DNA of 63,769 nt, the filler included, from Lenisia limosa (lineage: Eukaryota > Protista > Breviatea), in the NCBI GenBank assembly GCA_001655205.1. It is 15 parts of 15 records of this genome, joined end to end, with 100 filler letters (N's around TTAATTAATTAA, not from the genome) between each part and the next. Parts side by side here need not be neighbours in the genome. Positions count along the whole stretch, not along the records: positions 41,939 to 54,901 come from LPNZ01000689.1; 14 more parts are not named here. One strand, written 5' to 3'. Below the pieces are notes generated by a model that was not told the DNA's origin, did no database searches, and saw only the letters and a program-made list of their open reading frames with translations. Each line of letters opens with the position of its first letter. Positions within the stretch are counted from its first letter, which is position 1. The translations under genes were made by a program, and so were the position numbers. Shown piece by piece: positions 41,773-56,989 of this stretch.

Positions 41773-42390
41773 TATGCCCCTACCCACATCCCTCCACAGC
41801 TGAATTCATATTATGAGGTAAATGTACATATCATATTANNNNNNNNNNNNNNNNNNNNNNNNNNNNNNNNNNNNNNNNNNNNTTAATTAATTAANNNNNN
41901 NNNNNNNNNNNNNNNNNNNNNNNNNNNNNNNNNNNNNNTTTTTCTCACCAGATTTGATAATATTATTGTTAAAATTAACAGAATCCCACTTACATTTGAG
42001 TTTCCCTCGTTTTCAGCTCTTAAAATATAACTATTGTAACAGAGATAATTGAAGAAAAGGGATAAAACAACAAAAAACAAAGCAAAAACACAATTAAATA
42101 GTCCGCAGTATCGGTACTCTTGTGGCTCTTTATTTTTTTCTTATTGTTTTCTTTTTTCTTTTTTCTTCTTTTTTCTTCTTTTTTCTTCTTCTTTCTTCTG
42201 GTTTCTTCTTTTTAGAGCAGATTCTGCTTAGCTCTATGAGGTACTAGTAACTGTTGTTACAATTCATCATTTTACCAGTATTATAGATAAAATCAAGCAA
42301 TTTATACACGGCTTCACTGGCAAAAATACCCAAATTTAATTAATCCCAAGGTTTATGCAGAGCAGCATTTCAGTTGTCGAATTTCTAATA

Positions 42391-45300
42391 GTTTAGGCTC
42401 ATACCTACATTACAGGAGTGTGTCAAACCCGGCTAGACCGAATTTTCCAAGTTTGTCCTTCTTTTTAATGAAATTTTTCAAAATGCTATGAAGCGATATG
42501 AAAAATATTGATCATATAAAGAAGTTATTCATAGAAAATTATAATGTGTCACCTCTAGGACATGCAGGAGGAGCTGATCACTTTGGCCATTGCCTCAATA
42601 ATAGGGTGGAATATCTCAGATACAGAAAGTATCCGCCAGTTCCTATGGCGGTGGGGATGGGTTGAACGACTGAATGTTAAAAATTTGGCATTGTATATTT
42701 ATTTTGTCTCAAATTTTGGCATGTGGTCACGGATCACATTCTCACAATTTCAGTGAACAGGTGTTTAGCGATACATACTTATTGACTGTTTTGAAACCAA
42801 GACAGCTTGTCATTTATTACCAGTATGATGAACTGTTCTGACCAAATTGCAAAGATACTTTAAGGCATTGGTCACTATCACTATTGGATGCAATTATATA
42901 ACTATTTATTGTTTACAATCAGGCAAAAGTTAACACGTATTTATTATTGTTAGAAGGGGATACAACAGAATTTATAAGATATATTGTTGAAGTAACAACA
43001 TAGAATAAAAACAGAAACTACTATTGTATTGAGTAATATTTGTCACTGCAATTTTTGAAAGTCCTTATTGTGGAAACAACCTGACAATTCAGCACAAACC
43101 CATCATCAGCCATATTTGGCTTTTCTGATGAGACAATTAAAGACTGCACCTGGTGCCCAGAGGATATGGTACGCAGTCACTTAACCATACTTAAACGTTA
43201 TATTTTGCCTCACAAGATACATGAACATATTTTGTGTTGAAACAATTGATGATGGACTGTAAGCAACTTTTGAATGGATTGAAAAATTTTTGGCATGTTC
43301 CTTTACCATAATCTGGACTCAGAATATTTGTTATAATTTCCAAACAGGTGAAGTCCAATTTGACAGTGTTCTCCGGAGGAGTCAATATCTTTGGTGAACT
43401 TCAGCTAATCAGGTTGACTGGATGGTGTCATTATTTAAGGTTGCTATTGAATTATTTTTCTCAATAAAGTGAATCATAATTGTGTTATTGAAATTTTCAA
43501 TTTAACAAACTGTTTGACAATAATGTGAATGTTGTGACGACACCTTGATTTTTCCTAAATTCATTCGCCTAGGGACTCCAAGTTGACGGCCAATTTTACT
43601 GTACCATCTAACGGGGAAGAAACAAATTCAATTAGTATTCTGTTGGTGGACAGCAATGTTATTTGTGTAACTTAACCAAAAAAACAATTATTATTGTCAA
43701 CGACGCTGAGTTAGCAATATACAACAGAAAGGAACCATTGTCCTCTTTTAAACTTCAAATGGCCGACATTTATCAGATGTTTTTATATTGCTCTTGCTCT
43801 TTATAATTTAATACACAAGAATTCAATTACAATTTTAGAAAAACCGAGTTTGACAGTATGTTTGAGTCAGGAGGTCATATGGTGGGCATTATTCAAACAT
43901 ATTAACTTGTTACACATATAATATTATGTACAATTAAAGAGCTTTTCTTACCTTGTCAATATTGACATATTCTTCCAAAATATTACCTAAACTGTCTTTT
44001 TATTACATTTCTCAAAATGATTTGGAAATTTGTATACATTTTAAGAATTATTGTTAAGGTATGGTCCGAGCCAGCTTTCCACTCAGACATTAATGAGGGA
44101 GCATTAGTTATTGCATTAACTACATATGTAAGCACTTTTGATATGTATCTTAATTTCACAACTACGTAACTATGATAATTCAGACAAATGACACCCTTGT
44201 TACACCTCAAAAGAGTAGATTTGAATTTTCCACTGATGGAAGGTAGAGTTTTGTATTTCGTTCTGGATTATTTGGTAAATAAATTCATTTCCATACATAA
44301 ATAATAGAAATAATTTTTTTCTCAATAGTGGGATAGAGAACTGCATCTAAACGCTTTCATATTTTCACATATTTATTCAAATAGTGTGTTTTATTATCAA
44401 TAATTCAAACACAATATTTCAAAAAACATGACATAATAAATGTGAAACAGTACGGAACGAGGGGAGCCGAGCTGGGGAATGGCAGTGACATTCACTGAAA
44501 GAACCCTACAAGAAGCTCTGAGGGTATGATGACTAGGGTTTTGTTACATGACTGTTTTAAATTAGATGTTCAATTCAATTTACAATACGCTTTTCAGTTT
44601 TCAAATTCCTTTTAGGAAACCATCACACAAAGTCACACAGGGTTTGGCGTAATGCTGCTACATACTGGTAAGGTTAATGGTGACAAAACAGAATCAACTT
44701 TAAAATAAATCTTTAGCCTTTAATCTGGTCTTCATTGAATTTTTTTATAGTGTTATAATTATTCTAATTTTACTTCGACTTTCTTAACCCATGTTTTTGA
44801 CTTGATGTATTGTCTGGGAATGTTACTCTCCAAAGGCAATCAAGTTTTCATATACATTGGTTGTTCTAACAAGTATCATAAACATTTGAAGTAATAAACT
44901 GAATGATGGTAGGTCAAAATTCTGTATATAATATCAGAAAGAGTCTGCTGCACCAATAATATTTCCCAATCACCCTGTAGACTACACCGTTTTTTCAGCC
45001 TATTGTAACGGATGGCAGAAGAACGCTTTTGTAAGTGCAGAGATGAAGAGGCGGATTAAAATTTTGTGTCTTTGATTCAAACACTGCTTTTTGAATTTTT
45101 GTATTTACTACTTACATTGTCCATTCTGCTTTCGTCATCCGTATAGAAGAGAATGTTTTACGAGATTAACTGTCCAAATCTTGTGGATGTTGTCAATAAA
45201 ACTCTGTACATGGTAGGTATTGACTGTCGCTCCCAAATAATAAATTCTCCGATCTCCTCTAATCCCTTTATTCAACCCCCCCCCCTTTGAATTATACACG

Positions 45301-48300
45301 ATTCTGCTCATAATTTTAGCAAAAACAAGGTTTCTGAGAATATCTTGTTTTCAACACCTTATTTTCTATTATACCACCCAATAGTCCATTTACATATTAT
45401 CCAATATTTTAGGTATAAATAGTACTGTTCTCCTAAATACTCACAAAGTAGCCCCAGAGAAATTGGACCCATGTGGACGGTATGTCACTTAATGACGAAA
45501 TCAACCTCATTTCGGTCGGTAAAGTAAGGGCGTGTATTGAATAATGTTATGATTGGTTCATAAGATATTTATTTTGATATACTTTTCATACACTCAATTA
45601 TTGTGAATAGGCTGATATTAATAAAAGTGTTGAAAACAGAAACAAATACTTCATTGAACTTCCACGATAGTCCAGATGTTTTAAAGGTTTTCAAGAGAGT
45701 TTTATACATATATATATTAAATAACAATGGAGCCGTGATCGTATTGTTCATATATCGTATCCCATAAGTTTATTCAAATAATATAAAGTGTGTCAATGTA
45801 AATGCTCATTATTGAGACCACCACTGATAAAAGTATATCAAAGCCTCCGAGGAATTGTATTTACTACATAAGACAACATTCATCAGAGATGACATAGGCC
45901 TTCAAATGATGATGGTGACTGTCACCCCTCTCGTCAATGTCACAACATTGGTAGGTTGATATTACAGATTTCTTAGTGATATCAATTTGTTTTGTTGAAT
46001 TTGATTTGTATGTATATGTAGTCTATTAGAAGCTTTCAGAAGCCACATTTGTTTCTTTAACTAACTTCCCAGTACCTCAATGAAGTCGAGAACTTGGGAA
46101 CTGAGAAGCAGTCATATCAAACAACCCTACTGATCTCTACTCTTCTTTGTATGTCAATAACAATAATCTTATCCATGTGATGATTACGGGTTTGTAGTAC
46201 ACAGAATGATACATTTTTGATAACAACATAACTTGAATTTTGAGACTCTTCGAATTTTGTAATCTTTATGTATTGATAAATCACATTTGCTGAAAATATG
46301 ACTTCATCTGTCCCAAAAATAAGACACAATGCTTACAAAAGAACGAAATATTATGAATAGCCGTGTAGATTGTTGACCCAGATCAGGTGCAAGTATTTCC
46401 TTAGGTGTCACAATTTGCTTGTCTGTCCAATTTAGCGGTCCTATGAAACTCGTGTTGAAACAGTGGGCTAATTAGTGTTGTATATGACATATTGTGTGTA
46501 ATAACGAAAACGGGGGATATTGGTTTGAATTTGTAAACTTCATTTTGTTCATTTGTCTTTTATGATATCCGATAAAACTAGGGAATTTTTCAAAACAACT
46601 GAATCTTTTAGACCTATATAAATCATTCATAATTGAATTTTTAGACTGAATCAAGTCGGGCGTCTCGACTTTCAAAACCTTGAAACGTGGGAGGGGTAAT
46701 ATGGGAGGAAGGTTTTTTGACGTGAGAAAGATTATAGGTGAGCTAGGGGTGATATCTGTTTAACCGATTATCCAAATTGATTACATTCTTGGTATAAATA
46801 ACTCATCTAGCGGGGAACTATCCAACTCTTGGGTATCTGAGATCAACAAATTGGGCCAAGCATTTGTAGACTTGAGAAGAGACTTGGTGTCTTTCAGGTT
46901 TGACGGGAGAGAGAAGTTTGTTAATCAGCGAAGATATTTTGGTTCCTGATGTTACATTCACTGGTACTGTTGTTTGTTAAATGATTAACCACATTGCTTT
47001 TTGTGAAGTCGGGTACTTTATAATTATGAAATTTTTATAATTGTGATTAGTTCTCATTTCCACTTTCACACACCATAGTCGCTATATTCCAGTCAGCTTA
47101 GGTCCAATTATTCATGAATCTGGAAAAGACTCCGAGGTGAGTTTGTGCAGATAATGAAATTATTAAGTTGATAATTCAAGTGATGTTAACTATACTGCAA
47201 TTATAATATTAAATTATACTGATTCACTTTATATACTACTCCATATAAACATATATTAATACATATATCTGTATTTTTCCAAATGAATTTTTACATCCCA
47301 GTTGGGGCTGCTGGCCAATGACTTAACGTGAGTTTGGGCTCAATATGTGATCCTTTTTAGTAATTATAAACAAATTGTTTACACTTTCGCTATTTATCAC
47401 ACAAACATTTGCACTATAACCAAAACAACTTAATTTTTGATATTTTATTTCTTCTTTCGTTGCTTTATTCTGTAATATAATCTAAGTTTGTAGCTGATGT
47501 AATAATTCTTGTTTTTGCGCTTTCCTACAATTCATAATCAAATCGAATTACTCTGATTATTCAGTGTACTCACAAGTGATATCCAAGGCTTCACAGGCAT
47601 TTCTGAGGGTATGATAATTTGCCCTCCATTTGGCACAATATCATTCACATGTAATATATTTATTACAACTACACCAAGATATACAGAAAAGAGGTAAATG
47701 AATATCATATTCCAAAACATACAATCTTACTTTGACTTCTTCATTCTTAGATTAGTATTGTATTAAATTATATTTACTTTAAATGATTGTCTTTTTGAAT
47801 AAATATGATTCCTCGTATTTTTTGAGATATTACAATTGAAATTACGTTGGATTTACTGAGTTATTGCTGCCATGTAACTTTATGTAGAATTGGAGCCGCA
47901 ATTACTTGCTGAATTCCTTACGGAGTATTTGACTCTCATGGGTTCAATCATTGAGGAGGAGCAAGGCACTATTGGCGAGTGAGCAGAGTTGTAACTCAAT
48001 ATTGTTTTGGGTCTTTCTACACCTTAACCTACTTCGAGATGTAATGACACCCCAGGTTCCTTGGAGATGGGATTGTGGCGTTTTGGAATTCCCCAACAGA
48101 AGTTACATACCACGAAGGCCGTGCCTGCATTACCGCCCTACGAATGCAAGTAGGTTGTTTGCGCTGGATTTCATCCCTCTTATAGTTGTAATCATGAGCA
48201 TATTTTCTATCCACTATCTATTACAACACAAGGAAGCTTCATTTGTTGCCGAAAAAAGTCTAAAACAGAGACTTCAGCATCAATCTCTGATTACCCGAAT

Positions 48301-49800
48301 AGGCGTTTGTTCGGGTACAACATTGTATGGCAATATGGGTAGGTTGGAGTCAAGGATTAAGAAAACCTCAAAATGTCTGATTTTTATTTTGAATTGAGAT
48401 GTCATCATTTTCATTGCCTTCAACAGACATGAATTAGTATACATATAAGCTGGACAACACTGAATATCAGTGACACATTTCGACATAACATTATCAGGGA
48501 CAACAACGCACTTCAAATACGGAGTGGTTGGTTCAATTGTAAGCATGTCTTCAACACTGGAAGAGGCATGCAAAGTATTCAACTGCAAGATTATTATCAG
48601 CAAGTCAACTTATGTCAAAGTTGGTCACGAGTTTATATGCAGGTAGGTTATGAATTTAGTATTGTTGAACTCTTGATTCTTCTTTATCATTGTCAATAGT
48701 CCTCTGCTGTTTTTTGAAGTTGATTTTTCTTCATTTGTTTCATTTAATTAATTTTTGTTGTATATCTTAATAATATTGCCATTCAGTATCACAGTAAATT
48801 TTCATTGATTATGATGATTATCTTTTTTACAAATGTGGCATTTAGGTTTCTGCTTTACAATTTATTGTATATTGTGTTTAAACCAGCATTTTCTTATGCT
48901 CTGCACAGATGCTTGGGCAGAGCAGACATTATGGGTGAAAACAGGTTACCAAGTATTTTAATATTTGAACTTCTTGCAAGTCCCCCGCCACCAACAGGTA
49001 GGCAAAAGGGTTCCAGGTAGGATATATGTTAGTTGTTCTTAAACTAAAAAAACATAAACTCCTTTTCTATTTATTAAGTTTGGTAATATTTTGTGTTAGA
49101 GTTTTATTTGAAAGTAATTACAGCGGTTCCATTTTTGATTACGAAGCTTCCTATTCAACACTTGAAAACCTCATTGAATGCTGGAGCAACGCTATGCTAT
49201 GGCACAAATTTTTAGACGTATGTGTGACAGGATACTCACATTTGATATAGTGACAAATCGATATCATTAGATATGAGTACTGTGACTTGAAGACTCATGA
49301 TAAAATATCTAAATTCTCAATATGTGTCCGTAGATTATCTTCGGAGTATTTACTTAGGCATTCTAGGCCATCAACGAAAATAAGAAGAAACTAGCAGAGC
49401 ATCTTTTGACCTCATGGGTTCTGCAGTATGGAACGGTTGGCAGCATCTCCTTTTTGTAATGTTTTGCACAAGTTACTTGGGCTCTGTGCAATTGAAAAAT
49501 TAATTAACAAATTGAAGTTGGAACGAGAACAATTTCAAATTATTTCAATTAATTACCTCAAAAAAATAATTGCACAGAGCCGAACAAAGTACCAAACTAC
49601 GTATTGCATAATCAGAGCATGATGTGATTATTTTCATCATTATAGAACTATTACACAAAAGGCCTTCATTCCAGACTTTCCGCGATTCCTGGTGGGATCA
49701 CCATGAATATGGAGTAATTATCAACAACCGAAAATATTGTCTATTAATTTGAATAATTAGGCTCGCCTGACGACATCAACATTGAGCAGACTACAAAGGC
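42391..49800 (+). CDS. receptor-type class III nucleotide cyclase: Cache-like sensor, TM, HAMP, cyclase homology domain
   Basis: Phase-consistent exons 46073-46148, 46405-46462, 46645-46686, 46811-46897, 47079-47136, 47302-47327, 47565-47608, 47888-47978, 48056-48149, 48233-48338, 48498-48642, 48909-48997 give TTLLISTLLCVTICLSVQFSGPMKLVLKQLNQVGRLDF...SEINKLGQAFVDLRRDLVSFSRYIP...TVLTSDIQGFTGISEELEPQLLAEFLTEYL...GTIGEFLGDGIVAFWNSP...RIGVCSGTTLYGNMGTTTHFKYGVVG; upstream VWSEPAFH...LVIALTTY and WGMAVTFTERTL are Cache-like. Both gene ends are uncertain. Confidence 0.9.
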
Positions 49801-49951
49801 CATGGTTTATGAGCAATATTGATTAATATGGTCAGAATTGGACCAAAGCTATCTTATCTTTTCCCTGTTTAGAGCAATTGTATTGTTTTTGAAGTGAAGC
49901 ACACTGATACAGTTACTTAAACCAGTACATTTAGGGGAACATAATACCAGG

Positions 49952-52900
49952 TTAAGCCATCAATCCGTCGAAGCGACCTCCTCTCCCAGTTCCTTTTACT
50001 CGCTCATTTCCTCTTCCCCTTTCACTTCCTCTTCCCCTTTCACTTCCTCTTCCCCACCCATTTCCTCTTCCAATTCCTCTTCCCTGTTCACTTTCTTTTC
50101 CCTGCCCACTTCCTCTCCCTCTTCCAGTTACACTTCTACTCTCATTTCCTCTTTCTCTCCAATTGCCATTGCCCCGAGACCCTTCGTAGTAGTTGGGCAT
50201 AAGGTTCAGTCTAAACGCGTCCGACGCGGCTCTTTCTTCATCAGTCATATTCACTGCAAATGTGAGTTGTGGGTTGGGCACAAAACTGTGAAATCAATTT
50301 TTCTGATAGAGATGTCCCACTTCAAATTACCAACCTAATGTCTGCATTAAATAGGAGTATCAGAAAGATAGAAGCTTACTGATAATTGTTCTGATATTTG
50401 CAGCTCGCTGCTGATGATTGACAGCAGCCTTCATAAGGGTGCTGTCGCAAAGTAAACATGATAGAAATATTGTGGGTGTGTGAGGAGAAAGATAAACCAA
50501 GAGGATAATGAAGAAATAATAAATGTATAATTACTGGTGTGAATGCGTATTGGTCAAATAGTAAACTAGGATCCGAGAGCATTCAAAGGCTACAAAAAGA
50601 AAATCATATTATGTTCATACAATCTATGGTGGGTTGGGGTGGCTTATATGATGGTTATGGGGGAGATTAAAGATGTTCTGACAAATATGCTGTGCAAAAA
50701 GTGGAACAGTCAATTGAGGTTAGCCAATTCTCAAAAGAAACTAATTATTAAAGATATCATTAGAGTCTTTATACTTAATATTTGACATAATTAATTATTA
50801 TTTATAACATTACGACTATTAGTCCCCCCCATACTGTTTGTTGATAATGTATGGAACTGGGTATTGCTAAATGGTCAGGATAAAGATGCGGAAATTGGCA
50901 ATCAATATTTGATAATCAAGTTGGGACCAAGGACAACATATTATATTAAATATCATCTAGGGAATTTGGAAATGGGAGTTTCTTGAATCAGAATCATATA
51001 AATGTGGTATATTTGAAGGGAATTCTTAGAAGAGAAACTTAGTTTTTTGTTTAACTTGTTCTCTATCACTAACCGTTTCAAGATCCTTCCTCAACTCCTG
51101 AAGTCTTTCGTTAGTTTCTGATAGTCTTATTCTGTGGAAAAAGTAAAAAGTAATGTAAAAAAATTGACTTGAAAAAGTAATAAATCTTATGACCGGAGTT
51201 TCAAAATTAGACTTGGTCAAATTATAACTTGAACAATGGTATAATTATACCATGAGCGTGAAAAGATATAACAATTTCCCTTCAGAAAAATTTTCAAGAC
51301 TTGGAGGTTTATCAGTTAACTAACCAAACTTCGAAAAGTATATCCACAAACTCTTGATGGAGAGTCTCTAAAGATCCTTCGAATTTGGCTGTGTTCAAGG
51401 GAAATTCAACATTGCTCATTACGCTGATGTTTCGGTCGAGATCGCCACGTGTAATGATCTTTGAAATTATTTACAAAACAAACAGATCATTTCGATTTCA
51501 ATTTCATTTATACCATTATAAAAACCTGACCTTCAGACCCAACAAAAAGCCCACAATACCCCCAAGAAACATGCTAACATTCCGAAAATAAAACGCAAAT
51601 CAGCTTGTCGGCAAGTATTGATGGAAATTGTATTATGTTGTCGCTTTGTACATGTACATGTATTTATTCGTTTCCCTGGATATATTTAATGTCCCTATTA
51701 TGTTGCAACGAGTAGTTAACTTCCTCCCATGTTTTATATCATCTCCACCACAAGAACCAGAATGTTAGTACCGACTTCATAAATCAAAACAAAACAATGC
51801 AACACCCAGAATGCTCTCCAATATTCCCAATCCAACCTCTTTTCCGTTTTCATCTAAAAAATCATTGGTCCAGAATTCGTCAGTTTGGATATAGTCCAAA
51901 GCACCCAGTAAGATGTCCAAAAGGTGCGGAATTTCCACAAGCTGAATATTAAGTAATTGAAAGTGGCGTAATACACAGAAATAATTTAGAAGCAATTATA
52001 ATTTCAAGTTTATTATACTCGAAACTACTAATGTAATTATATTAAAGTTATACATGATGGAGTTTAGCATGACATAATGTTGGTTTTGGGATTCTGTACG
52101 TAATATTATATCTTTGAGCTATGTACACCCATAAAAATTAAGCATAAACACTTCCGAAACAGCTGAAAGCACACTTAATACCTAAACTTACATGATTTAA
52201 AACGTCCACTGGTCCTTCCCCATCGAATGGGTGGTTCACCATATTTTTGATATGTCTAGTGGTGTTAATTTGATGTAAAAACACTTTTAGATAATTGTTA
52301 AGCTGTGGGAGTGCTTTGAAGATATTAAAATGTCTGAGGTCGCCCTGGCAATTGTCTCACTTCAAATATTGCATTCAATTTCTATTATTATTCAAAAACT
52401 TATTATATTTCATTTATTCTTTTCTTCAAGATTAACATACTGGAGCAAGCCGGGAAAGAATTTTGCAGGTGGCCGTCCACCAGCTTTGCTAATCTTCTGC
52501 ACTGTCTAAAATGTCGGCGATGTTACATGAAACTTGTAATTTTAGACCATAATAGCGAAGCCGGTGCTAACAAATAAATTATAGCCCCCTCCCATTGGTA
52601 TTGATTTTCACATCTCTTATCACAACCACATATTACATATAATTACATACATATTACAGATAATTATATAACTATATATATATGATATGATATGATATAC
52701 ATTCACCAGAATCCAAGATACGATTTTGACTAACATTGAATTTGAGTTGCTTAGGCGAGTACTTCATTAGGATATATGGCCAGTTGTCATAAGCTCCCAC
52801 AATACTGAATTTGTAAAAAGACCAAGAAATAATATCAAATAGGGAAACATATTGTAAAAATAACTCCATTTCAGGTTTATAATGCAAATTATGTCAATCC

Positions 52901-53500
52901 ATTATTATAAATAGTAACAGCTCAGAATCTTAGTTGTAATCGAATATTGAGAGAATATGAAGGGAGGAAATTCTGAAGGGAATCACAAAATATCAAGTGG
53001 TCATTATACAGGGTCTCAAATCCTACCTTGCAATAGCCAATTTATTTGTTTTTCTATTGAGAAAGTCATTCATTGTGTATTTCTTCCAATGCTTTTCAGG
53101 AAAGTCATCAACCAAAACGAATTCCGGATAGTCTGTCAACTCATTGATTGTAGCCTAAATTGTAATAGGTTCAATTTAAACAAAATCAATTTAATATTTG
53201 GAAGTAGGTAGACAATTTGGATCCCTAAAGATATTGTCTCCATCACTCCAGAGTATCGAAATTATAAGTAAGAAATACGCAACAAAAAATGAGGGAATCA
53301 GGTTGAACGGAACTAGTCTTCTCCACGAAGCGTTAGTTTCAGTATTAAACAAGTTCCATAATTGACATTGTACGCACATATCCAGCAGTCTATGAAAGAG
53401 GTACTCACATGTACATACCTTGACAATGAAAAGCATTATAGTTGTTTTGATCATTTGATCGTCTTTGTAGATTTGATTCCAATCCGCTGTGAGAATTAAT
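49952..53500 (-). pseudogene. spliced, partly decayed gene with an RG/RGG-rich C-terminus; possibly transposase-related
   Basis: Exons ATINELTDYPEFVLVDDFPEKHWKKYTMNDFLNRKTNKLAIA|SIVGAYDNWPYILMK..., HIKNMVNHPFDGEGPVDVLNH, LVEIPHLLDILLGALDYIQTDEFW, TLMKAAVNHQQRAANIRTII|MNMTDEERAASDAFRLNLMPNYYEGSRG...(GRG)n; at least one frameshift near 51320. Confidence 0.45.
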
Positions 53501-54149
53501 AGAATGCTAGAGGCGTATACTATAAATGGAAATTTGACAACTATAAAGGAACCGAAAGAAAAGTTGTGAAAATTATCCCAATGTTACAAAGTCAGGTTGC
53601 AAGTAGGTTTGTTTGTTTCTGTGTTGGATCCTTGATCTTTCACTCAGAGAACCCACCTACCGATTTTGTCAGACTTCCAGTTGACAGGGTTCTAGAGTGT
53701 AAGTGCTTGAGTTATTCAACTTGTGCTCTAAGTTGGACAATGAATTTGAAATGAACCATAATACTCAAACTCTAGAGATAGTTTTTGGTACAATATTCTG
53801 GTCCGAATCAGACTCCTTAAAAAATGCGAGGATCCGGATCTGGTTTTGGTATCTACTCGGATCCTATATCGGATCCTGAACGATCCGAAGAGATAAGGGT
53901 AAGATCAGACTAACTATATGACAATTTTATTTTGATAAAAAATCAATAAAAATTTGAACAATATAGGTGGAGGCACATGTGTTTGGGCACCCACATGAGT
54001 GTGGGCACTTTTTCATTCTTTTATTTTTTCCAAAAGGGGGAGCAGCAACGATTTATCTTAAAGCAATTATCAAAAAAACCACCTTTTTGAAAAATAATAA
54101 TAAGAAGTGTATTCATACAGATATAAAACATAACATAGAGAGGGTAAAA

Positions 54150-54870
54150 ACACAAAAACTAGCGTTTGCGAGAGCGAAGAATTGTTTTTGTCTTCGTCTT
54201 CATGACTTTCCCAAGCTGTTCTTTGATTCAAAAGTAGTGAATAAGTTGAAAAAAATGAGAACTTACCTTTTTTCTAACATTTCTTTTTTCTTTTCTTCAG
54301 CCAAAACTTCAGACCAATGTTTAGGAGACATAGGAGCAATTGATTTTCGTGGTTTTCTACCAACTTCATAAGCCATTTGAACTTTCTTTCCGACCAGTGG
54401 ATTACCGATTGTCCCGATAAACTGCCACTGCCTTTAAAGCTTCTGCAGTTTCTTCCTTTGTGAGATCTTCATTTTTGGCAAGACTAATCAAGAGTCTGTC
54501 TGAATTCGGGAGAGCTTCTACCAATCGCCAAGGGTCAATTGTAATTGTTGGCTCATCGCCTTCACTGACACAAATACTTGATTATTTCAAAAGCTTCCTT
54601 CACTTTCTTCTTGGTTGTGGCAATAGAGAGAGCTTCCGTACAGGCTTCAACTTTCTGGCATCACTTTCTTCATGGAAGCATTATAGAAGCGATGTAGGAT
54701 GGTCTTCACGACACCAAATGTCACCAAATCCAGTGCCTGGGTACACTGCGAAGTGTGTGATGGGAGCAGGTTAAGGCTAAGGAGGTACTCAAGCGCATGA
54801 TAAGCATATCGAGAACTGTGACCGTCAACAAGGAAAAATGCCCACTTTTGGCACAACATACTGAAATACG
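54150..54870 (-). mobile_element. pogo/Tigger/Fot1-family (DDE_1) transposase remnant, cut by the scaffold end
   Basis: FFLVDGHSSRY...LLPSHTSQCTQALDLVTFGVVKTIL matches the pogo DGHxSH / LPxHxxxxxQPLD motifs; frameshift before ...ATTKKKVKEAF; GTAAGT intron near 54265. Confidence 0.85.
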
Positions 54871-56989
54871 TATTCTGTCCAAGTTGTACAATTCTAAATT
54901 GNNNNNNNNNNNNNNNNNNNNNNNNNNNNNNNNNNNNNNNNNNNNTTAATTAATTAANNNNNNNNNNNNNNNNNNNNNNNNNNNNNNNNNNNNNNNNNNN
55001 NGGTCTGCGGTTTCAGAAAAAGGCTTTATTCGAAACTAAACTGAGTGGAACGGGCATAAACCCAAAAAAAATCATTTTTTTTAAAGATTAGTGAAGGAAT
55101 ATTTTGACTTTAAGGTCAAATTTTTTCAAAAAATAAAAAAAATTTTTGTCTTGCAAGATCCTTCTGTGGTTTCCACCACTTTTTGAGAGAATTCAACTTC
55201 ATGATTGTCTAAAAACCGGAATTGGCAAAAAAACCGGAATTTTGAACGGACGCATATGATATAATATGTAATATATCCTTCTATCTATAGATATGATAGG
55301 TATCTACATATTATATCATACTTTCTCATATAAAATAAGGTGGGCGGGGGGTATGAAAGCGGTTGGGTCATAGGGATGCCAAACAATCCAAGTCGGAAAC
55401 AGTTTTTTCCCGCCGTGTTAAATATAAATAGTGACCGATATATCTTTTTGCATGGAAATCGGATTTTAAATCTTTTTATGACCCTAAATTATGATTCCAG
55501 AGGACATTTTTTTTACAATAATTTAGTGAATGGATTAAGAAAAATGTGTCTTTTTGGGAGTATTTAAGTGAAAACCCTGAATTTTGTGAATGGTAATGTA
55601 GAACATCTGATTGCACAGCCTGGCTTATACTGAATTGAAATGACGTCAATTTACTTCTCTTTATTTTTCACCATTGTTTTACATTATTGTGAAATAGGGA
55701 ACTCATGTGATGAAAAAACCCCAATTTTTGCGGTTTTAATCATACAATAGAATATAAGATATGCCATATTCCCAATAAACGCTACTTTAAAAGAATTCTA
55801 CATAATGTAACTAATATTTATAGTTATTATTTTTTTCCTTTTTCTACTTTCTAAAGTTAAGAGATGGGTTTCTTCATTGGATCCTTTTACTGCTGAATCC
55901 TGGAAACTTGCAGTCGAAGACTGCTTCTTAGAGGCTGATTAAGCTTTCTTAAAAGAAATATCAGTTTTCAAAAAGTTTTGGGGTAATCAGTTTCTTCCTG
56001 ATCTGTCGAAGGTGTGCTTCCTCTCAATAGTATAGTAATACTCCGCTATGAATACCCTCAAAACCCTTTGAAATTTGGTCACACCACTAGAGAATGTGGT
56101 CCTGTATACCCTTGTATTTTTGGAGGTTACACCCAATGTACACCCTCAAACAATGATTAAAAGCTTCTTGAGACTCGTGGAGAGGGAAAAAACGTGACAG
56201 TTCGGGTAAATGTTTGGAGGGTCTTTATTGGTCTTTGGTACAAAACAAAACTCAGGAAAACAAAAGTGGGGTACTAAGCTAGCAAATGGGCAAGAAAAAT
56301 TCAGTTCAGCTCACCCTTTTCTCCAATTTTTTTTTTTTCCAGAGCCCCTCTTTTGCAGTTTAGATTTGCGATTAGTATTTTTTTAAGACTATTCTAGAAA
56401 ATTCTAAAAACAATCAATTTTGGTAAAAAAAAATGCTTTCCCAGTGTTAATTATTGAAAATTGTGTAAAAATGAGTTAAATCGCATCTAATTGCGGATTT
56501 TTGGATGATTTTTAAAAGCGTTCGCGTTCTTGTGAGTGCGTTCATGTATGGTCACCTATATGACATTCCGATGACGCAGGAATATGGCATGGGTGCATTG
56601 TCGAGGTTGGCTTAAGGAGGTTCCGAGGGACGAACGACGAGTGAGAGTCGAGGAACCTCCGCAAAACAACAAAACTGCCCCTTGCCGAGGGAATATGAGC
56701 AATCACCATATACTAAACTTTTCCAACATCATAATCANNNNNNNNNNNNNNNNNNNNNNNNNNNNNNNNNNNNNNNNNNNNTTAATTAATTAANNNNNNN
56801 NNNNNNNNNNNNNNNNNNNNNNNNNNNNNNNNNNNNNTCTTAAAGTGTTTCTCATGCTCACGAATGGCTCCTGGGGGGGGGGGAAAGGGGGGGGATAAGG
56901 AATCGAGTAGGAAAGAACATCAAAACAATAGACGGGGAGAGGGAGGGGGCGTAAAATTCTGCCAAAATGATAAAAATTACCACTCTAAT

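Follow-up and report, generated by a model that had tools for sequence, protein, structure and literature searches.

Asymmetric cyclase dimers, which combine one working site with one regulatory site, are central to cyclic AMP and cyclic GMP signalling in animals. The C1 or alpha subunit of such a dimer supplies two Asp residues and an Arg, and the C2 or beta subunit supplies the base-specifying pair together with Asn, Arg and Lys (table in PMC6005667); C1/alpha subunits nevertheless retain base residues that they do not use (PMC6005667). Asymmetric dimers have recently been shown in chytrid photoreceptors as well (PMC12264004), where NeoR has Thr and Lys in place of the NxxxR motif, keeps Glu and Cys, is inactive alone and forms with RGC1 a dimer of one active and one regulatory or degenerate site (PMC12264004). 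Cya2, an active homodimeric guanylyl cyclase, is distinguished by a Glu-Gly pair and a supporting Lys (PMC6005667). The window considered here is a stretch of 63,769 nucleotides of DNA from the breviate Lenisia limosa (assembly GCA_001655205.1), within which a piece of approximately 13 kilobases (positions 41939-54901, LPNZ01000689.1) was analysed; the piece is AT-rich, with a guanine-plus-cytosine (GC) content of about 33%, and all negative results given for it are limited to it. This piece carries an intron-rich gene for a cyclase homology domain (CHD) of the Cya2 type that is a candidate half-site subunit of an asymmetric receptor cyclase. To our knowledge, the bacterial Glu-Gly guanylyl cyclase family is otherwise known solely as symmetric homodimers.

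A cyclase homology domain spread over short exons

The exons between 47565 and 48997 (+ strand) are confirmed to encode a class III CHD. Two hidden Markov models (HMMs), profile A from 99 bacterial cyclase domains with a KYGVVG loop and profile B from 14 bacterial CHASE2-cyclases, were each compared with the 910 stop-free segments that six-frame translation of the piece yields; the proteins behind both are scored as PF00211 by Pfam. The five best segments for profile A were five CHD exons in colinear order (E = 0.025, 4.8e-4, 1.9e-4, 5 and 1.8e-6), while profile B found two exons significant, 48056-48149 (E = 4e-9) and 48498-48642 (E = 3.5e-7), and matched three others weakly and colinearly. 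Similarity to PF00211 proteins thus runs across the domain, and both metal-binding residues are in place, with GAT at 47578-80 and GAT at 48066-68 aligning to columns that hold Asp in 99 of 99 bacterial domains. The exons of the domain and of the tail that follows it are as follows.

47565-47608, + strand: CHD exon 1 (VLTSDIQGFTGISE), with the first metal Asp at 47578-80 and a Gln at 47584-86 (HMM E = 0.025 and E = 0.0014; tblastn identity of 60-67% to Ruegeria cyclases).
47888-47978, + strand: CHD exon 2 (LEPQLL...EEQGTIG), its last two bases opening the Glu codon (HMM positions 34-64, E = 4.8e-4).
48056-48149, + strand: CHD exon 3 ((E)FLGDGIVAFWNSP...), which completes the first-base Glu and carries the second metal Asp (48066-68; HMM E = 4e-9 and 1.9e-4; tblastn identity of 50-56%, E ~1e-6).
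48233-48338, + strand: CHD exon 4 (..LITRIGVCSGTTLYGNM), with Arg 48296-98 at the canonical phosphate-Arg position (weak colinear HMM match, positions 107-136, E = 5).
48498-48642, + strand: CHD exon 5 (TTTHFKYGVVGSIVSMSSTLEE...), with the second-base Gly, Ser for Asn and Thr for Arg (HMM E = 1.8e-6 and 3.5e-7; atlas assignment to PF00211, 0.95; joined to 48909 in RNA).
48909-48997, + strand: CHD exon 6 (CLGRADIMGENRLPSILIFELLASPPPPT), which has no Lys (both junctions in the polyadenylated (polyA) RNA contig).
49147-49213, + strand: C-terminal tail exon (SYSTLENLIECWSNAMLWHKFLD..), its acceptor at 49147 confirmed by the RNA contig.

Several further comparisons agree with this assignment. A language-model atlas grouped exon 48500-48640 with PF00211 clusters (score 0.95), and tblastn of the same exon against plasmids gave weak matches, the annotated ones lying inside "adenylate/guanylate cyclase" genes whose products combine CHASE2 with PF00211. 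These plasmid CHASE2-cyclases match the gene exon by exon, with 50-56% identity over 48056-48149 (E ~1e-6). Ahead of the domain, the linker exons 47079-47136 and 47302-47327 align to the bacterial family consensus FGRYLSDEVV...LGGE.. with a gapless score of 20, compared to -26 +/- 12 for shuffled sequences, only 9 of 20000 of which scored as high. Queries for Pfam, PDB, phmmer and word searches were single exons or stop-free stretches (14-48 residues per exon), and concatenated exon translations were used for the gapless linker comparison, the codon map and the tree. Single exons found no match in Pfam or among PDB sequences because they are too short. An exhaustive phmmer search with exon 48500-48640 against 1.84 billion representatives likewise returned nothing at E <= 0.001, a word search with a 60-residue stop-free stretch gave no candidate, and no related locus was confirmed among contigs from genomes or metagenomes. 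In metagenomes, a degenerate DNA pattern encoding DGIVAFWNSP had a single match, which lay out of frame in a bacterial response-regulator gene and was dismissed as chance.

The gene is intron-rich, eukaryotic and transcribed. Its plus-strand chain of short exons is separated by GT..AG introns of 77-279 bases with compatible phases, GC content averages 44% in exons compared to 29% in introns, with the GC islands falling on exons, and the frame is open for 268 codons over 10 exons. A single polyA RNA contig of 158 nucleotides (depth 5.6) contains the last 12 bases of exon 48498-48642, the whole of 48909-48997 and the start of the 49147 exon to 49200, joining 48642|48909 and 48997|49147 at GT..AG sites; the gene is therefore transcribed, and is spliced as predicted at its 3' end. 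The remaining junctions, including 47978|48056, which forms the Glu codon, are predicted. A DNA-like sequencing run carries the stretch without any difference and probably gave rise to it, and the polyA RNA run belongs to the same study. The initial annotation, made from the DNA alone, had described a spliced eukaryotic gene with many introns, and the splice sites, phases and polyA RNA bear this out, the RNA for the two 3' junctions; its coordinates and the motifs SDIQGF, GEFLGDG, KYGVVG and VSMSST proved exact. It had also judged that the gene does not look decayed, and the findings that it said would overturn its view included an absence of expression and an alternative exon restoring N-x3-R. 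The gene does not seem decayed, given the open frame across 10 exons with intact phases, the GC contrast and the spliced polyA RNA. Expression is evident from the contig, and neither profile detected any other CHD-like segment among the 910 segments on either strand; the piece therefore offers neither a second CHD nor an alternative exon by which NxxxR could be restored.

The 3' end of the gene must precede approximately 49900, where the transcript of a minus-strand neighbour ends. With that neighbour ending near 49921, the CHD is C-terminal and followed by just a short tail.

Catalytic positions and the case for a heterodimer subunit

Species-representative bacterial genomes scanned for the pattern KYGVVGxxVN yielded at least 120 loci, and the family counts used here (99 domains, 73 proteins and the tree) rest on the matches listed. 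Of the 120 loci listed, 107 have Glu and 6 have Asp at the first base position, and 7 lack a recognisable motif. The combination of Glu with KYGVVG thus marks the family rather than arising by coincidence, and in practice a KYGVVG loop can be taken to predict a first-base Glu, or in rare cases Asp, in many phyla. The loop defines a large bacterial cyclase family (loci L006-L125) found in Cyanobacteriota, Myxococcota, Pseudomonadota, Acidobacteriota, Spirochaetota and others. The pairing had been given as the mark of Cya2 in the initial annotation, and this is correct according to both the bacterial relatives and PDB 2W01, whose sequence reads ..ILTSDLRGFT.., ..GTIDEFMGDG.. and ..TKYGVVGAQVNLTYRIE...

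The L. limosa domain has the whole base-recognising part of this signature. Judged by column counts over the 99 bacterial family domains, its first base position is the expected Glu (95 of 99, the other 4 being Asp), encoded by a GAG split over a junction (47977-78 and 48056), and KYGVVG at 48515-48532 provides the supporting Lys (AAA, 48515-17) and the second-base Gly (GGA, 48521-23). The Glu, Gly and Lys typical of Cya2 are thus all present, together with the two metal Asp residues. The catalytic pair is not: the ribose-Asn position is Ser (AGC, 48542-44) and the transition-state Arg position, Arg in 99 of 99 family domains, is Thr (ACA, 48554-56), so that the replacement of N-x3-R by S-x3-T read from the sequence initially is borne out. 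These two residues lie 7 and 11 residues past the Gly, a spacing equal to that of Gly562, Asn569 and Arg573 in Cya2 (positions in the table of PMC6005667); the search pattern itself fixed the Asn column, which makes an Asn count uninformative for the bacterial family. The phosphate-binding Arg450 of Cya2, two residues past the first Asp and Arg in 97 of 99 domains, is replaced by Gln (47584-86), and the canonical phosphate-Arg column, Gly in 98 of 99, holds Arg (CGA, 48296-98). A Lys occupies the last phosphate position (Lys8; Lys608 of Cya2) in 98 of 99 domains; exon 48909-48997 aligned to the C-terminal part of the family with a score no better than that of shuffled sequence, and Lys8 is not placeable.

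Membership in the Glu-Gly family is suggested by this signature and the profile scores, not by the tree. When 85 Glu-Gly domains and 4 Lys-type outgroups were combined with the L. limosa domain in a 90-row tree, computed by quick maximum likelihood, the latter came out at the base of the Glu-Gly set beside the Lys-type outgroup, in no supported clade and with no supported sister. Nine of the ten best tblastn scorers, among the matches listed, are cyanobacterial; a cyanobacterial origin is not supported despite these scorers, as the tree does not group the L. limosa domain with them. The label "cyanobacterial" in the initial annotation was accordingly too narrow for a signature found in many bacterial phyla. 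Lys-type CHASE2-cyclases also occur on alphaproteobacterial plasmids (L001-L004), with a FecR-domain gene adjoining in L001, L002 and L004. Their unusual AFWNAP motif resembles AFWNSP in L. limosa exon 48056-48149, where the Glu-Gly family has LVLFGAP; the L. limosa domain therefore mixes signatures of both groups.

Position for position, the L. limosa residues reproduce the C1/alpha row of the table in PMC6005667: Asp, Asp and Arg are kept, Asn and Arg are lost, and no Lys can be placed. Because the kept and lost residues match those of adenylyl cyclase C1, soluble guanylyl cyclase (sGC) alpha and NeoR, the best reading is that this half-site, Cya2-type CHD belongs to a C1/alpha-like subunit of an obligate heterodimer, part of an asymmetric receptor cyclase, and its chances are judged to be about even. 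The protein would be of the membrane receptor type, with at least one predicted transmembrane (TM) helix, a HAMP-like helix, a conserved linker and a single C-terminal Glu-Gly CHD. This domain would offer two metal Asp residues and a phosphate Arg, and would offer neither ribose Asn nor transition-state Arg nor gamma-phosphate Lys, so that a homodimer would have two crippled sites. Activity would require a head-to-tail heterodimer in which a paralogous subunit brought the base-specifying pair along with Asn, Arg and Lys. One site would then work on a substrate set by the partner, and a second, degenerate site would be lined by the Glu, Lys and Gly of the L. limosa protein, where nucleotide binding might act as a regulator. 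By analogy with the described dimers, we infer the dimerisation, the partner, the output and the role of the dead site; the retained Glu, Lys and Gly may be an ancestral legacy or may form a regulatory nucleotide pocket. The initial annotation had suggested a GTP-type half-enzyme serving a heterodimer partner. The half-enzyme fits the C1/alpha and NeoR pattern, but "GTP-type" is invalid because in a head-to-tail dimer the base residues share a site with their own Asn, Arg and Lys; Glu and Gly would belong to the dead site, leaving specificity to the partner.

There are several observations that weigh against a heterodimer subunit. The equivalent of Lys8 cannot be aligned, and the Arg at the canonical phosphate position could be there by chance. 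The terminal branch of the L. limosa domain measures 6.5 substitutions per site compared to a median of 0.38, with a best identity of 34%, and so long a branch could mean relaxed constraint. No orthologue or paralogue came from any collection searched; RNA support consists of one low-depth contig of 158 nucleotides spanning the last three exons; and no partner gene (a second CHD) occurs within the 13-kilobase piece, the sole part of the genome covered. Some of these points would suit a catalytically dead pseudo-cyclase, in which the CHD is kept behind a sensor for dimerisation, for scaffolding or for binding nucleotide or metal, never contributing to catalysis, and the Asp, Glu and Gly are inherited and unused for turnover: four near-invariant phosphate and ribose positions are all altered or not placeable, the branch is extremely long and the piece contains no partner. 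Such a protein is somewhat unlikely, though a serious candidate, when all five metal and base residues (Asp, Asp, Glu, Lys and Gly) are retained at 34% identity or less alongside an Arg at the canonical phosphate position, a selective retention that is typical of C1/alpha/NeoR-type subunits.

The very long branch, the weak RNA signal (one contig, depth 5.6) and the lack of detected relatives could also be read as signs of a decaying or recently inactivated copy, with a frame still open by chance. This is quite improbable for a frame that stays open through 10 or more short exons, every GT..AG site and phase being intact, in a gene with a strong GC contrast between exons and introns (44% vs 29%), correctly spliced polyA RNA and structural motifs conserved over the whole domain. 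An active homodimer in which non-canonical residues replace Asn, Arg and Lys would not be without parallel, as the Asn is missing from certain active class III cyclases, such as Ma1120 with Ala in its place (PMC4215837), and the metal and base residues of the L. limosa protein are intact. However, the Arg is regarded as crucial (PMC12264004) and is present in 99 of 99 family members, and here Arg, Asn and the family Arg past the first Asp are altered together with no Lys placeable, which makes an active homodimer very improbable indeed.

Upstream region and neighbouring features

An ab initio chain extends the gene upstream by approximately 20 further predicted exons, from about 42236 to 46686, including a hydrophobic stretch of about 26 residues and HAMP-like sequence. 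The features between the hydrophobic stretch and the CHD are as follows.

46073-46148, + strand: predicted exon with the start of the TM helix (..QTTLLISTLL), from the ab initio chain (composition, splice-site weights and phase), on a GC island.
46387-46462, + strand: predicted exon (..FSGPMKLVLK) that would complete the TM helix and open a HAMP-like helix 1, from the ab initio chain, on a GC island.
46645-46686, + strand: predicted exon of 42 nucleotides (LNQVGRLDFQNLE), possibly the end of HAMP helix 1 and the connector, from the ab initio chain.
46811-46897, + strand: exon with a HAMP helix-2-like segment (GELSNSWVSEINKLGQAFVDLRRDLVSF), top of the 910 segments against the HAMP HMM (8.4 bits, E = 0.11), its phase fitting the next exon.
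47079-47136, + strand: linker exon before the CHD ((S)RYIPVSLGPIIHESGKDSE), aligned without gaps, jointly with the next exon, to the bacterial family consensus.
47302-47327, + strand: mini-exon of 26 nucleotides (LGLLANDL), with GT..AG boundaries and fitting phase, covered by the same gapless comparison.

The frame holds with or without the exon at 46645-46686 because 42 is a multiple of three. An HMM of the HAMP region of 14 bacterial Glu-Gly cyclases ranked the AS2-like exon 46811-46897 best of the 910 segments, with a weak score (8.4 bits, E = 0.11), and Pfam, including HAMP (PF00672), found no match with this exon alone. A HAMP domain is accordingly weakly supported by similarity, its putative helix 1 coming from ab initio exons. 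The initial annotation had proposed a Cache-TM-HAMP input, of which the HAMP part receives this weak support and the Cache part does not: Pfam on 20 upstream stop-free segments and tblastn of the motif exon against plasmids returned nothing, an atlas query returned unrelated families, and the best match to an HMM of dCache-like domains, built from 9 bacterial Glu-Gly cyclases, had E = 11, all four tests being insensitive for exons of about 20 residues. A motif resembling the Cache consensus was noted by eye at 44059-44127. CHASE2, suggested as the sensor by the best plasmid matches, was rejected, as the CHASE2-cyclase HMM matches CHD exons only.

The bacterial family itself uses varied inputs. 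The 73 proteins scanned include 42 with receiver domains, 14 with CHASE2, 7 with HAMP, 5 with PAS_9 (the commonest PAS model) and 3 with dCache_1, and several Glu-Gly proteins join dCache-like, HAMP and CHD modules. The Asp variants of the KYGVVG family also include proteins that combine a dCache-like domain with HAMP (L068, L080 and L105).

The minus-strand neighbour, which lies close to the cyclase gene and tail to tail with it, is expressed, with a polyA RNA contig of 1496 nucleotides (depth 19.9) covering 49921-50253 and 50380-50400 onward; the joint reads CT..AC, which is a GT..AG intron in minus-strand orientation. The last exon of this neighbour codes for an Arg-Gly-rich tail (open reading frame 49955-50293), and the CT-rich tandem repeats at 50004-50136 are that coding repeat. 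A short dispersed repeat at 49531-49580, in the 3' region of the cyclase gene, matches five other contigs of the DNA-like run over approximately 40-50 bases at 90-95% identity and shows a depth bump (71.7 vs 32.3). At the far end of the piece, an open frame at 54650-54901 (- strand) runs off the end, and its motif ..VDGHSS..LPSHTSQ..ALD.. looks by eye like that of a DDE transposase from pogo/Tc-type elements; Pfam found no match for this frame at E <= 1. Near the start of the piece, 42127-42213 is a T-rich microsatellite with units TCTTTTT and TTTCTTCTTT.

Comparison with known cyclases

Asymmetric CHD dimers are already known, and what is new here is that a bacterial guanylyl cyclase family has a half-site form in a eukaryote, encoded by an intron-rich gene. 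The gene suggests that the C1/alpha-type split arose again, within the bacterial Glu-Gly guanylyl cyclase lineage. Should a partner come to light, the two subunits would offer a natural experiment on half-site evolution, bearing on the role of a degenerate site with intact base residues. A more elaborate scenario may be considered, in which a eukaryote acquired or retained a Cya2-family CHD and then evolved the alpha/beta (C1/C2) split anew and independently; the losses would comprise Asn, Arg, Lys and the family phosphate Arg, the phosphate Arg would have moved to the canonical strand position of animal cyclases, and the Glu-Lys-Gly guanine triad would make the dead site an allosteric GTP-sensing pocket of a receptor heterodimer. 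As a whole, this scenario is speculative and unlikely.

Compared to Cya2 and the bacterial Glu-Gly family, the L. limosa protein shares a Glu four residues ahead of the second metal Asp, the KYGVVG loop with its second-base Gly, LTSD around the first Asp and the FGRY..LGGE linker ahead of the domain; some bacterial members likewise have dCache-like, TM and HAMP modules preceding the CHD. Bacterial members, however, keep the Arg past the first Asp, the Asn, the Arg and the Lys; at these positions the L. limosa protein shows Gln, Ser and Thr, with no Lys that can be aligned, and it has Arg where they have Gly. In addition, the L. limosa gene is eukaryotic, has many exons, shows no more than 34% identity and gains no supported place within the family in the tree. 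NeoR of Rhizoclosmatium globosum is likewise a single-CHD eukaryotic receptor that has lost NxxxR (to Thr and Lys in NeoR, to Ser and Thr in L. limosa) and kept its base pair, but NeoR has a rhodopsin input and Glu-Cys, whereas the L. limosa protein has an apparent extracellular region, a HAMP-like helix and Glu-Gly; NeoR has a known partner, RGC1, while the 13-kilobase piece shows none for the L. limosa protein. Mammalian adenylyl cyclase C1 and sGC alpha also have Asp, Asp and Arg, lack Asn, Arg and Lys, and keep base residues in the pseudo-symmetric site (PMC6005667). They differ from the L. limosa protein in that C1 is fused to C2 in one polypeptide, sGC alpha, a soluble protein, has a haem-binding beta subunit as its partner, and the CHDs of both belong to class IIIa, in contrast to the bacterial-type Glu-Gly lineage of the L. 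limosa domain.

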